A DNA stretch of 63,183 nucleotides, counting the filler, from Chiloscyllium plagiosum (lineage: Eukaryota): the NCBI RefSeq assembly GCF_004010195.1. It is 6 parts of 6 records of this genome, joined end to end, with 100 filler letters (N's around TTAATTAATTAA, not from the genome) between each part and the next. Parts side by side here need not be neighbours in the genome. Positions count along the whole stretch, not along the records: positions 52,613 to 57,317 come from NW_025196216.1; 5 more parts are not named here. One strand, given 5' to 3'. Position 1 is the stretch's first letter. Every line of letters begins with the position of its first letter. Shown one piece after another: positions 52,613 to 57,317 of this stretch. The notes under the pieces are model-generated. The model did no database searches. It saw only the letters and a program-made list of their open reading frames with translations, and was not told where the DNA came from. The position numbers and the translations under genes are program-made.

Positions 52613-53828
52613 GTCAATCTGCTTTCTTGCACTGAAGTAACCTGAAAAGAGATTGTGTTACATACCTCTCTAACAGAGTGTAAGTGAACACAGGCCACCT
52701 GGCACAGAATCAGGGACTCTACTACAACATCACAACAGACCTGAACACAATGAGCTTGACACTATCACGGAGAACACAGCCCAACTGTTTTGACAATACA
52801 TAAACCATGTTAGTTATTATCACCTTCCAACAACCAGGGATTGTTCCAGAATTTTTGTACAATGAAAGTAACATTTCAACATTTATCCAAGAATGCTTTG
52901 ACAGCAGCTCCAAATTGTTCAAACTCTATGGGAACTACAGAGGAATAAAACTCGGAATTGCATTGCCATCAAATCACTGTCACTGGATTTCACCCGAGAA
53001 CTCCCTTCCTCTTTCCCCTGTGAAAGTTGCTGCACCAGACGGTCGACTTAGTTTGGAAAAGATTAAAATGTTTTGAAATGTAATATGACCGTTGCCAGTG
53101 ACATTAAAAGCTGATAATAGGTTTTCAAATAATAAGATACAACAAAATTCTGATTCTACATTGTGCCACGGAACATGTCCTGCATAACTGAGGCACAAAG
53201 AAAATATACAGCATATTTCCCTCTGCTTCGCTCAATCAAATATCTCTTGTTGCCAACAACCAATTTCAAAACTCTTGCTATCTGCCTTTTGTTCCTGAAA
53301 CGTTCGTTCTGATTGGAACAACTTAGTCAGGGCTCTCAATTCTGAAGCACCTACAAACTGCACAACAGACTTAATCCTAGAGGATAGATTGCTCAACTCC
53401 TCACGTCAAATATATTCACTGTAATTGAACATTCATCAGAGGAACTAACCAGAGGATTAATGTGAATGAGAATGTGTTCACAATGAACATAAATAACCAC
53501 TGAGTTAATAAACTTAATAAGTCATTGTATTTAACAAAATTATTGAGGTGGGAAATATCGCCAAATAAAGCACAGATCCGGAGGAAATGGATTATTCTCT
53601 AAATTATTTTTACATATTCTTAAAACGTTCCTTGAACTGTGGAGATTTTGCATGCAGTGCATAAAGTCAATACTGCATTCCAGTGTGGAAAGCATTTCTG
53701 TTGAATGAATTAGGGCAAGGTCATTTTCTTGTTAACTGCTTTTAATAAACGAAAATGTTTAAAAAGGTATGAATTGAAAACATGCTTCTGTCTGGAGTTG
53801 CCCGATTTAGCGGATGTCTAAGTAAATG

Positions 53829-54118
53829 TGGGCACTGCTGCCTCACAGATCCAGGTACCCAGGCTCGGTTCCATCCTCGGGTGACTGCCTGTGTGGAGTT
53901 TACGCAATCTCCCCTGTGTCTGTGTGGGTTTTCTCCCACAATCCAAAGATGTGAATGTCAGGTGAACTGGTCATGCTATATCATCCATCGTGTTAGGTGC
54001 ATTAGTCAGGGGTAAATATCGGGCAGGGGAATGGGTCTGGGTGGATTACTCTTCAGAGGGTCGGTGTGGACTTGTTGGGCCAAATGACCCGATACATACT
54101 GCAGGAAATCTAATCTAA
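53829..54118 (+). mobile_element. HE1-like V-SINE (in the JH-C intron)
   Basis: V-domain and tail. Confidence 0.87.
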
Positions 54119-54369
54119 ATGATTGTCACACTTAACTAATGTGAGCAGATTCCTTCCGATCGCTACATTGCAATAAATCGGTCAAGTATATTTATTAAAA
54201 TAAATATGACTCTATTTTAAGTTTCTGAATAAACAATGTGCTCTGTTATCCTCTAGTTCATGTATTCTGCAAATTTGTGAACTCTGCATCCATCTGAACA
54301 CATCGATGTAAAATGGATTCTCTGCGTTTGCAGCAAGCACTCCCATGGTTTGAAAATTAGGGTTCCTAC

Positions 54370-54711
54370 AATATAGAAACAGGCCATTTGGCCCAACAAT
54401 TCCACACTGACCCTCTGAACAGTAAGTAGCACACCCAGACCCATTCCCCCTAATTTATATTTACCCCTGACTAATGCACCCTAACCTACACATCCCTGAA
54501 CACTATGTGCAATTTAGCGCAGCCAATCACCTGACCTGCACATCTTTTGGACTGTGGTAGGAAAACAGAGCGCCCGAAGGAAACCCACGCAGACTCCACA
54601 CAGGCAGAGAATGTGCAAACTCCACACAGGCAGTCACCCGAGGATGGAACCGAGCCTGGGTACCTGGATCTGTGAGGCAGCAGTGCCAACCACTGAGACA
54701 CCATGCTGCCC
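54370..54711 (-). mobile_element. HE1-like V-SINE (in the JH-C intron)
   Basis: Reverse copy, tail-to-tail with the previous one. Confidence 0.87.
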
Positions 54712-56004
54712 TGCGAGTTCATGAGTGGATTATTTTAATNNNNNNNNNNNNNNNNNNNNNNNNNNNNNNNNNNNNNNNNNNNNNNNNNNNNNNNNNNNNN
54801 NNNNNNNNNNNNNNNNNNNNNNNNNNNNNNNNNNNNNNNNNNNNNNNNNNNNNNNNNNNNNNNNNNNNNNNNNNNNNNNNNNNNNNNNNNNNNNNNNNNN
54901 NNNNNNNNNNNNNNNNNNNNNNNNNNNNNNNNNNNNNNNNNNNNNNNNNNNNNNNNNNNNNNNNNNNNNNNNNNNNNNNNNNNNNNNNNNNNNNNNNNNN
55001 NNNNNNNNNNNNNNNNNNNNNNNNNNNNNNNNNNNNNNNNNNNNNNNNNNNNNNNNNNNNNNNNNNNNNNNNNNNNNNNNNNNNNNNNNNNNNNNNNNNN
55101 NNNNNNNNNNNNNNNNNNNNNNNNNNNNNNNNNNNNNNNNNNNNNNNNNNNNNNNNNNNNNNNNNNNNNNNNNNNNNNNNNNNNNNNNNNNNNNNNNNNN
55201 NNNNNNNNNNNNNNNNNNNNNNNNNNNNNNNNNNNNNNNNNNNNNNNNNNNNNNNNNNNNNNNNNNNNNNNNNNNNNNNNNNNNNNNNNNNNNNNNNNNN
55301 NNNNNNNNNNNNNNNNNNNNNNNNNNNNNNNNNNNNNNNNNNNNNNNNNNNNNNNNNNNNNNNNNNNNNNNNNNNNNNNNNNNNNNNNNNNNNNNNNNNN
55401 NNNNNNNNNNNNNNNNNNNNNNNNNNNNNNNNNNNNNNNNNNNNNNNNNNNNNNNNNNNNNNNNNNNNNNNNNNNNNNNNNNNNNNNNNNNNNNNNNNNN
55501 NNNNNNNNNNNNNNNNNNNNNNNNNNNNNNNNNNNNNNNNNNNNNNNNNNNNNNNNNNNNNNNNNNNNNNNNNNNNNNNNNCACATTATAATTTTAAGTT
55601 AGTTTCAATTACATAATCTGATCAATTCTGCAGTTTCAGATTTTAGTCCCAAATTTTATTTTGAATGAGGCTACTCAAAACAAAATTCAGTTAGTTTACA
55701 ATTAGAACTGAGTTTTTTTTTAAAAAGTCAATGCATTAAAAACTCGTTTTTTTCATTTCTCACACTTCCGGGTTTCTGCCTTAAGTTGTTTTTCAGACCG
55801 TTACAAATGGATGTAATGTTTTCAATCAAGCAGAGAAAAATGTGTCATATAAGTTTAACAAATGCAGAAATGATTCATGAAAAACCAAAGAACTTCACAA
55901 ATATTGGTAATGAAAAGTAATCCAGAGAGTTAATCTCCTCACCAGAAAGAAAACACCGATTACAGAAAGCATGAAAACGCTGATCAATTTCACAAACTGA
56001 ATAA

Positions 56005-56295
56005 GATCCAATCAACTCAATTCAACAGAATCAAGGAAAATAAAATCAGAATCCAATCAACTCAGAACAACAGATTTGAATGAAACATAATCAAAATCCA
56101 AACAATTCAATTCAACAGAATCAAATAAAACAATTTCAAAAGCCAATCAACACAATTCAACAAAACCAAGTAAAAACAAAGTCAGAATCCAATAAACACA
56201 GTTCAAACCGAACCAACTAAAACAAAGCCAAAATCCAATCAACTCAATTCAACATAATCAAGTAAAACAAACTCAGAATCTAATCAACAGAATGC
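56005..56295. repeat. Degenerate ~45-46-bp tandem repeat built from pentamers (AATCC/AATCA/ACTCA/ATTCA...)
   Basis: ATCCAATC-like anchors at ~56006, 56051, 56096, 56141, 56187, 56233 and 56278. Confidence 0.8.
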
Positions 56296-56794
56296 AATAT
56301 AGCACCGCAAGAAAAGTTTATGACAGTCTCTAACCTGCTTGTCATCAACTAATTAACGAAATAAATGCGAAAATATAATCAGGGTAAGAACATATATTCA
56401 AGAAATTAATAATGATATTTTAGCATATTTTAATCATGTTTAGTAATGTCTCGAACATCTTTGATTTCTTCGCGTTTGTTGTTGATAATAAAACTCACAG
56501 TCACTGACATTAACCATTATTTATAGCTGACTGATTAAGAGACATTAGGTGTTTTAAGTAACCCAGCCACACAGAATGCCCATCTGATCAAAAAGAGATT
56601 CACCGAGCAACTGACTCCATCATCCCCATTGTAACTATTTGCTGAGCCTTAACTGAAGTCTGTAATCAGTCTGAACAAAAATCAATCCGAACCAAACCAA
56701 ACTCAGCACAGAATCTGAGTTTCATTTAATTCAGAAATTAGTCACATGAATAGAAAGTTTTTAAAAAGTCACTAAGAAAATTCAAGGGTCTTAC

Positions 56795-56850
56795 CTGAAG
56801 TCACTGTCACCATGGTCCCTTGGCCCCAGTAATCAAGATCGTAGTTATAT
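56795..56850 (-). CDS. IGHJ: IgH JH segment, apparently pre-joined to a D2 remnant (DJ)
   Basis: A TAT AAC TAC GAT CTT GAT TAC TGG GGC CAA GGG ACC ATG GTG ACA GTG ACT TCA G|GTAAG = YNYDLDYWGQGTMVTVTS, with WGxG motif and donor. Confidence 0.92.
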
Positions 56851-56878
56851 CACTGTGAGACACGTTCTGTCAAATACT
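56851..56878 (+). other. 12-spacer RSS 5' of the (D)J segment
   Basis: CACTGTG + AGACACGTTCTG (12 bp) + TCAAATACT, directly abutting the coding end. Confidence 0.75.
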
Positions 56879-57179
56879 ATTACAGACTGTAAACTGTAAA
56901 ATGCAGAGAATTTCTTCACTTCCTAGAAAGCAGTGATTCAGACTCCTCTAAAAATGATTCAGTGTGTTATTTCAGCTTTTACGATCCATTGTATTTTGAA
57001 AGCTTGGAATACTTTTCCAGGTTTGGTCTGCATTTAACTTGACAATCAACACTAAGAAGGTAGAACAATTATACATTTGTACAAACTAGCACTACTGGAT
57101 TGCGTTTAAATTGCATCTCACATTATTTCTCGCTCCTGCCATGGTAGAAATCACCAATTTGAGACAAACACTTGTCAGT

Positions 57180-57217
57180 GGTTTTTGTATGAGGATGTTG
57201 CTGTGCACAACACTGTG
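57180..57217 (-). other. 22-spacer RSS 3' of the V(D) segment
   Basis: CACAGTG + TTGTGCACAGCAACATCCTCAT (22 bp) + ACAAAAACC; consensus heptamer and nonamer. Confidence 0.93.
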
Positions 57218-57228
57218 ACCCACTGTAG
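57218..57228 (-). CDS. IGHD: D1-like remnant fused to the VH end
   Basis: CTACAGTGGGT lies between TGT GCA AGA and the heptamer. It matches my recollection of the shark IgM D1 core (TACTACAGTGGGT) and carries the 22-RSS typical of the D1 3' side. Confidence 0.7.
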
Positions 57229-57317
57229 TCTTGCACAGTAATAGATGGCGGTGTCTTCGATCTTCAGGTTCTCCATGTCCAACACGAAAATGTTGTTTGA
57301 AGTGTCTTTGGACGCAG
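57229..57317 (-). CDS. IGHV: IgH VH segment, FR3 end only (IgM-type; 5' part lost at the join)
   Basis: [29 protein letters not shown]. Confidence 0.92.

Follow-up and report, generated by a model that had tools for sequence, protein, structure and literature searches.

The locus described here raises the question of how an antibody heavy-chain cluster can stand in a genome assembly with its V already joined to D1 and its D2 already joined to J, and of whether such joins were inherited or were made in a lymphocyte. Encoded on the minus strand, the gene is found at one end of a 4705-base piece (NW_025196216.1) of the Chiloscyllium plagiosum assembly GCF_004010195.1. This piece occupies positions 52613-57317 of the window, by which we mean the whole stretch of 63,183 nucleotides, filler included, that was analysed. 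Judged by its sequence, the piece belongs to an IgM-type minilocus of cartilaginous fish, of which it represents the V(D)J end, with VD1, 22-RSS, 301 bp, 12-RSS and D2J in that order, and only the 3' part of the VH is included. The record is 4.7 kb long with an internal N gap and an edge that falls inside V, which is a poor assembly context for a multi-copy family.

To delimit the segments, positions 55582-57317 were compared at 90% likeness with Logan contigs from three runs of organism A (X1, X9 and X16) and one run of organism B (X14). The features, in window coordinates and in the order of transcription, are:

57229..57317, minus strand: 3' end (FR3) of a VH gene segment, identified by translation and truncated at 57317, where the piece ends
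57228..57218, minus strand: D1 remnant of 11 nt, CTACAGTGGGT, directly fused to V with zero added letters
57217..57180, minus strand: D1 3' RSS, with heptamer CACAGTG at 57217..57211, a 22-nt spacer and nonamer ACAAAAACC at 57188..57180
56879..57179, minus strand: D1-D2 intergenic spacer, 301 bp between the nonamers, from two RSS scans; an unrearranged organism B contig, X14 record 14, runs collinear with it
56851..56878, minus strand: D2 5' RSS with a 12-nt spacer, in which the plus strand has heptamer CACTGTG at 56851-56857, spacer at 56858-56869 and nonamer at 56870-56878
56843..56850, minus strand: D2 remnant, of which 5 nt are common to the D2 elements of all relatives and 8 nt are shared with the X9 variant
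56840..56842, minus strand: three junction letters templated by neither the D2 nor the J of the relatives
56795..56839, minus strand: JH segment, ...DYWGQGTMVTVTS, with the 5' end trimmed by 3 nt and a splice donor GT at 56794..56793
52613..56792, minus strand: part of the J-C intron, with an N gap (841 N), a 45-bp tandem array and SINE-like inverted repeats

The V portion on the piece comprises the last 89 nt of the segment, with the final base of the AGA codon at 57229. Reading from 57315 downwards, it translates as 29 codons of a conserved FR3 ending YYCAR, a fragment too short for Pfam or family tests. The letter at 57229 can be assigned to either V or D1, and the D1 remnant is followed at once by an RSS that matches at 7 of 7 heptamer and 9 of 9 nonamer positions (16/16). 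Among 300 mononucleotide shuffles of 55582-57317, which served as the background, the best score was 13/16, reached 8 times. The earlier note on this DNA, which had a VH end of TGT GCA AGA running into a D1 core and then into a consensus 22-spacer RSS, is therefore confirmed, on the minus strand. The 11-mer CTACAGTGGGT occurs once in the available text of a Heterodontus IgH paper (PMC2191167) and also occurs in unrelated papers. A protein search with the 46-residue read-through of V, D1 and the signal returned no candidate, a blank made uninformative by the 25-80-residue length window of that search. Two FR3 positions, 57272 (E versus G) and 57284 (V versus A), set the window apart from all or most contigs of the relatives, with an amino-acid change in each case.

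The signal on the other side of the 301-bp spacer matches at 6 of 7 and 6 of 9 positions (12/16), which is a chance-level score, as 98 of the 300 shuffles reach at least 12. It is accepted as the D2 5' RSS because it abuts the coding end and is homologous to the D2 5' signal of the unrearranged relatives; the score itself counts for nothing. No further RSS or D element was found between the two signals, either by a scan for heptamers of at least 5/7 including CAC with nonamers of at least 6/9 or by a scan for combined scores of at least 12/16, so the absence of a free D, V-RSS or J-type RSS noticed previously holds for both. The position of the 12-RSS and the fusion of a D2 remnant to JH were likewise correctly described, while the remnant is 5-8 nt long and not 4 nt as had been thought. 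The D2-J coding block is 56 nt (56850..56795) and reads YNYDLDYWGQGTMVTVTS in the J frame, followed by GT; the J motif WGQG and the splice donor GT are both present in the window.

Past J, the piece holds only 4.2 kb, and the distance from J to Cmu1 in the nurse shark is given as 6.3-6.8 kb in the sections of PMC2435157 used here. Inspection of the minus-strand translations of 52613-56792 gave no Ig-like ORF of at least 40 aa that could be a C exon. The intron contains a 45-bp tandem array at 56006-56288 (6.2 copies, 76% matches), about 500-800 bp downstream of J and T/G-rich on the gene strand (T 0.53, G 0.23). The array is common to the family, as the relatives' contigs break at its edges. 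An RSS-like site inside it, at 56197-56240 on the plus strand (CACAGTT, 12- or 24-nt spacer, 13/16), is probably due to chance in A-rich repeats, 13 being reached by 8 of the 300 shuffles. Beside the 841-N gap, the J-C intron also contains two copies of a SINE-like repeat in inverted orientation, with arms of 84 nt that are 95% complementary (53828-53911 and 54607-54690) and of 44 nt that are 91% complementary (54046-54089 and 54382-54425). An Rfam search of 52613-54739 matched no family.

The relatives provide the reference against which both joints can be read. The comparison matched 176 contigs in X1, 151 in X9, 13 in X16 and 21 in X14, and the evidence below rests on the 32 pieces listed, with 344 further pieces unlisted; Logan contigs drop rare variants. 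On the V side, contigs of X14 and X16 match the window down to 57229 and then continue with GAC and the heptamer CACAGCG, the relatives' V ending 0-3 nt past AGA with a heptamer of its own. Contigs from the D1 side, found in X1, X9, X14 and X16, carry D1, the 22-RSS and the spacer and match up to 57229, behind which come 2-3 more D1 letters, the heptamer CATTGTG, a 12-nt spacer and a weak nonamer. On the J side, the match ends at 56839 (X1, X9 and X16) and gives way to ACT and the heptamer CACTGTG. Contigs coming from the spacer match as far as 56846 (X14 and X16) or 56843 (X9), and those of X16 and X9 then run through 7-10 more D2 letters into the heptamer CACTGCA. In the relatives, the 12-RSS stretch thus leads into a complete D2 with a second heptamer behind it, and about 330 bp further on comes a J-type heptamer. 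The loose ends of these contigs are 30 letters each, which is too short to show the signal spacers of V, D2 3' and J.

The unrearranged state is seen in a single contig of organism B, X14 record 14 (1066 nt), which follows J up to 56839, continues for 407 letters in place of the window's six (56840-56845), and resumes at 56846-57229. It differs from the window at 1 of 177 positions and, over 56846-57229, at 8 of 384. Close split genes therefore exist, this record and the contigs of X1, X9 and X16 being about 97-99% like the window. As V, D1, D2 and J each have their own signals in the split relatives, the V-D1 and D2-J fusions of the window are read as RAG-type joins; what the window is without is exactly the V/D1 and D2/J signal pairs and the DNA between the members of each pair. 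In elasmobranch IgM clusters the signals follow the scheme 12-D1-22, 12-D2-12 and 23-J. From this scheme we see the D1 3' 22-RSS and the D2 5' 12-RSS in the window, and the 12-nt spacer 5' of D1 and the heptamers of D2 3', J and V in the relatives. The same minilocus layout, VH-D1-D2-JH, is given for the nurse shark (PMC2435157, in excerpt).

In some short contigs of X1 and X16 (organism A), the D1 5' signal, D1, the 22-RSS and about 57 nt of spacer are followed by a switch at 57122/57123. The letters beyond it, including those of X16 record 23, overlap the J-type signal region seen behind 56839, and the site is not adjacent to a heptamer. These contigs could come from a D2-less cluster in the relative, from a diverged spacer or from a k-mer graph chimera.

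The order of the segments can also be read from joined sequences. Depth in X1 is about 100,000 over V, 40,000 over J and 77-700 between them, from which we infer that this run, labelled 'DNA?', behaves as an Ig-rich RNA library. Contigs of X1 and X16 leave J at 56795, as a spliced message would, and enter exon-like letters that, judged by the starts of shark Cmu1, may be Cmu1. X1 contains 13 fully joined VDJ contigs, in 10 joint rows, which link 56831-56838 to 57228-57232. Their CDR3 inserts, 11 of which are listed, are 13-36 nt long; five of the 11 have the D1 core and several have D2 pieces. Therefore, CTACAGTGGGT is encoded by D1 and lies between V and D2 in transcripts, and the joined contigs confirm the segment order V-D1-D2-J in that family. 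The D2|J form of the window is absent from the 11 inserts listed because all of their J-side limits fall at 56831-56838.

The V|D1 joint reflects trimming of 3 nt from V and of 2-3 nt from D1; a single letter is common to both, and there are no additions. At the D2|J joint, D2 keeps 5-8 nt, J has lost 3 nt and three letters are untemplated. The coding segments are fused at 57229/57228 (V|D1) and at 56843-56839 (D2|J), with each signal pair excised at its heptamer borders; the breakpoints lie 0-3 nt from the heptamer/coding borders for V, D1 and J and 7-10 nt for the D2 3' end. This comparison shows that both deletions start and end, after trimming of a few nucleotides, at heptamer/coding borders that the split relatives keep, which is the signature of cleavage by RAG followed by end joining. 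Lee et al. (PMC2193156, in part) argued from such heptamer-border breakpoints that RAG had acted on the germline-joined light-chain genes of sharks, and those genes are described there as having little N region. In the window there is no N region at V|D1, and three unexplained letters are present at D2|J; letters 56842..56840 may be N-like additions or may come from an unseen J allele. The earlier claim that the V-D junction needs no N nucleotides holds. Its central proposal, that V-D1 and D2-J are already joined and that one 22/12 pair is left, is upheld by the relatives' contigs, which break at 57229, 56839, 56846 or 56843, and the alignment to unrearranged clusters that it called for, done here on contigs of related organisms, delimits D1, D2, J and the D1-D2 spacer. 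The frame was also correctly foreseen: the VD1 side leaves 2 nt and the D2J side leads with 1 nt, so that blunt joining preserves the frame, as would be expected for one third of random joins.

The same evidence bears on two readings in which no RAG join was made at these places. The piece might be an ordinary unrearranged cluster of a D-less family, with CTACAGTGGGT as a regular V end and the 12-RSS as a regular J signal. V(23)/J(12) layouts, which are known in other antigen-receptor loci, speak for the idea. However, the relatives' V stops within 3 nt of AGA at its own heptamer, the 11-mer sits behind a separate 5' signal in contigs from all four runs, and the relatives continue past the 12-RSS into a full D2, its heptamer, about 330 bp and the J-type heptamer, while in the transcript-like joined contigs the D1 core has V on one side and D2 pieces on the other. 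As CTACAGTGGGT is D1 and the 12-RSS is the D2 5' signal in the relatives, a D-less family, an alternative that the earlier note had itself named, is rejected as hardly credible. It is very improbable, too, that deletions without RAG, by replication slippage or unequal exchange between clusters, have mimicked V(D)J joins. Clusters in many copies, about 97-99% alike, would favour unequal exchange, and the organism A contig that leaves the spacer at 57122/57123 does so away from any heptamer. Against this, the distance from breakpoint to border is 0-3 nt for V, D1 and J and 7-10 nt for the D2 3' end, nothing remains of either signal pair, and homology at the joints is at most 1 nt.

Given that the joins are of the RAG type, they could have been made in the germ line or in a lymphocyte. 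We consider the cluster to be probably a germline-joined VD1-D2J that is inherited. Somatic junctions are unique to each clone in the nurse shark (PMC2435157, in excerpt), and the germline reading is favoured because the junction of one clone should stay below assembly depth, yet two junctions are found here on one contig. The lack of additions at V|D1 also speaks for it, and elasmobranch germ lines are described as containing H-chain clusters joined in part or in full (in sections of PMC2193156 and PMC5192425, among others). The window departs from the relatives at sites scattered over 1.7 kb, 14 of those listed lying in 56300-56599 and 2 in the V part; therefore, the piece would represent a separate locus or species and not a hypermutated copy of the contigs seen. 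Somatic hypermutation as the main source of the private letters was rejected, as the differences are densest in the intron and not over V. The other possibility, which we regard as unlikely but of some weight, is a somatic intermediate from T- or B-lineage DNA, or a mis-join among near-identical clusters, lying outside the inherited genome. VD-DJ intermediates occur at most IgH loci in nurse shark thymocytes according to the parts of PMC2435157 consulted, and lymphocyte-rich DNA would therefore include such molecules; VD-DJ is moreover one of the '2R' configurations cloned there from nurse shark lymphoid DNA. Three untemplated letters at D2|J count against the germline reading, being commoner in somatic joining, and the record is short, gapped and ends inside V. 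When 64 words sampled from the stretch were searched in public runs, 24 runs were returned, 20 of them with part of it, and none of the 20 reached half of the words (best 0.47), so that the locus as such is in no public run. The four runs compared show, among the pieces listed, other alleles or paralogues that are only unrearranged or fully joined, and none of the 32 pieces listed bridges either junction of the window. In all four runs, moreover, the contigs covering 57165, 57199 and 57284 differ there from the window letter, which also counts against the germline reading. Nevertheless, a unique junction would be expected far below assembly depth and two are present on this contig, no letters were added at V|D1, a graph mis-join cannot yield a fusion at an overlap of at most 1 nt, and the many differences over 1.7 kb, densest far from V, fit a separate locus or species.

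This arrangement has counterparts in other cartilaginous fish; the published work is cited here from excerpts of the papers named. A 2016 review lists VD-J and VD-DJ among the germline clusters that are partly joined (PMC5192425), H-chain clusters have been described as 'rearranged, partially rearranged, or nonrearranged' (PMC2193156), and joining, partial or full, is said to affect about half of the loci. In the literature searched, 'VD-DJ' turns up in 6 papers, two of them on cartilaginous fish, and as far as the excerpts go it is applied to germline clusters only in the 2016 review (PMC5192425), the other reviews having VD-J and VDJ only. VD-DJ is thus already known both as a germline class and as a somatic intermediate, and the window adds a further case with well-resolved joints, not a new type of antibody gene. 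The joined IgH clusters of the horn shark and other elasmobranchs (VD-J, VD-DJ and VDJ) have the same VH-D1-D2-JH minilocus layout, and in elasmobranch joined clusters the segments are likewise fused in the genome, with their signals gone and other signals kept. The likeness to the horn shark clusters is drawn from the descriptions in reviews.

The nurse shark '2R' VD-DJ (Malecek et al. 2008, PMC2435157) has the identical configuration, with the D1-D2 spacer and both signals retained. It differs in being unique to each cell, with trimming and N/P additions, and in being absent from erythrocyte DNA (PMC2435157), whereas the cluster described here comes from a genome assembly and shows no additions at V|D1 and three extra letters at D2|J. 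The nurse shark IgM1gj, a fully germline-joined VDJ of neonates, is also of the IgM type with a CDR3 fixed wholly or partly in the genome, and it is the model for an early-life function of joined genes (PMC5192425, PMC2193156). Unlike our cluster, which still needs one join, IgM1gj needs no RAG, and it has three C domains. Among the nurse shark NS4 light-chain genes (Lee et al. 2000, PMC2193156), joined and split members share up to 99% identity, and the fully excised signals, trimmed ends and little N region of the joined ones were the basis for proposing RAG in germ cells. NS4 differs in being a light-chain VJ with one complete join; Southern blots, together with clones obtained from several sharks, established the germline origin of these joined genes. 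Chicken VH pseudogenes also have V-D fused in the germ line (PMC2193156), but these are gene-conversion donors without signals or J, whereas the VD of the window has a perfect signal.

Under the germline reading, and by analogy with other shark Ig genes, both joins would have been made in the germ line of an ancestor and the cluster inherited thereafter. The remaining 22/12 pair is the normal D1-to-D2 pair of the family. A single RAG cut in a lymphocyte would then bring D1 and D2 together, with the loss of 367 bp as a signal circle, giving a VDDJ exon, in which CDR3 diversity would be limited to the D1|D2 junction alone. Granted this reading, whether the cluster is used or is a dead relic is a matter on which we lean slightly towards the relic, with use a real possibility. 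That it was inherited and selected as a single-junction IgM gene with a fixed VD1 and D2J, serving a semi-invariant early-life repertoire and belonging to a series of clusters halted at various stages of joining, seems to us quite improbable.

If the joins proved to be somatic, the piece would be a warning about lymphocyte-derived contigs in the assemblies of animals with many Ig miniloci. If the cluster is inherited, it would offer a clean, natural view of two joins that RAG made in germ cells. With split relatives 97-99% alike, both of its joints can be read nucleotide by nucleotide, a reading for which the H-chain junctions of the horn shark were too varied according to Lee et al. (PMC2193156, in excerpt). 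A series of such clusters, if true, would imply repeated RAG activity in the germ line with no set order of joining, as in shark lymphocytes. It could also serve as a census of that activity and of the sequence in which the segments are joined, and an inherited cluster would be a candidate for a restricted-CDR3 antibody gene of embryos and pups.
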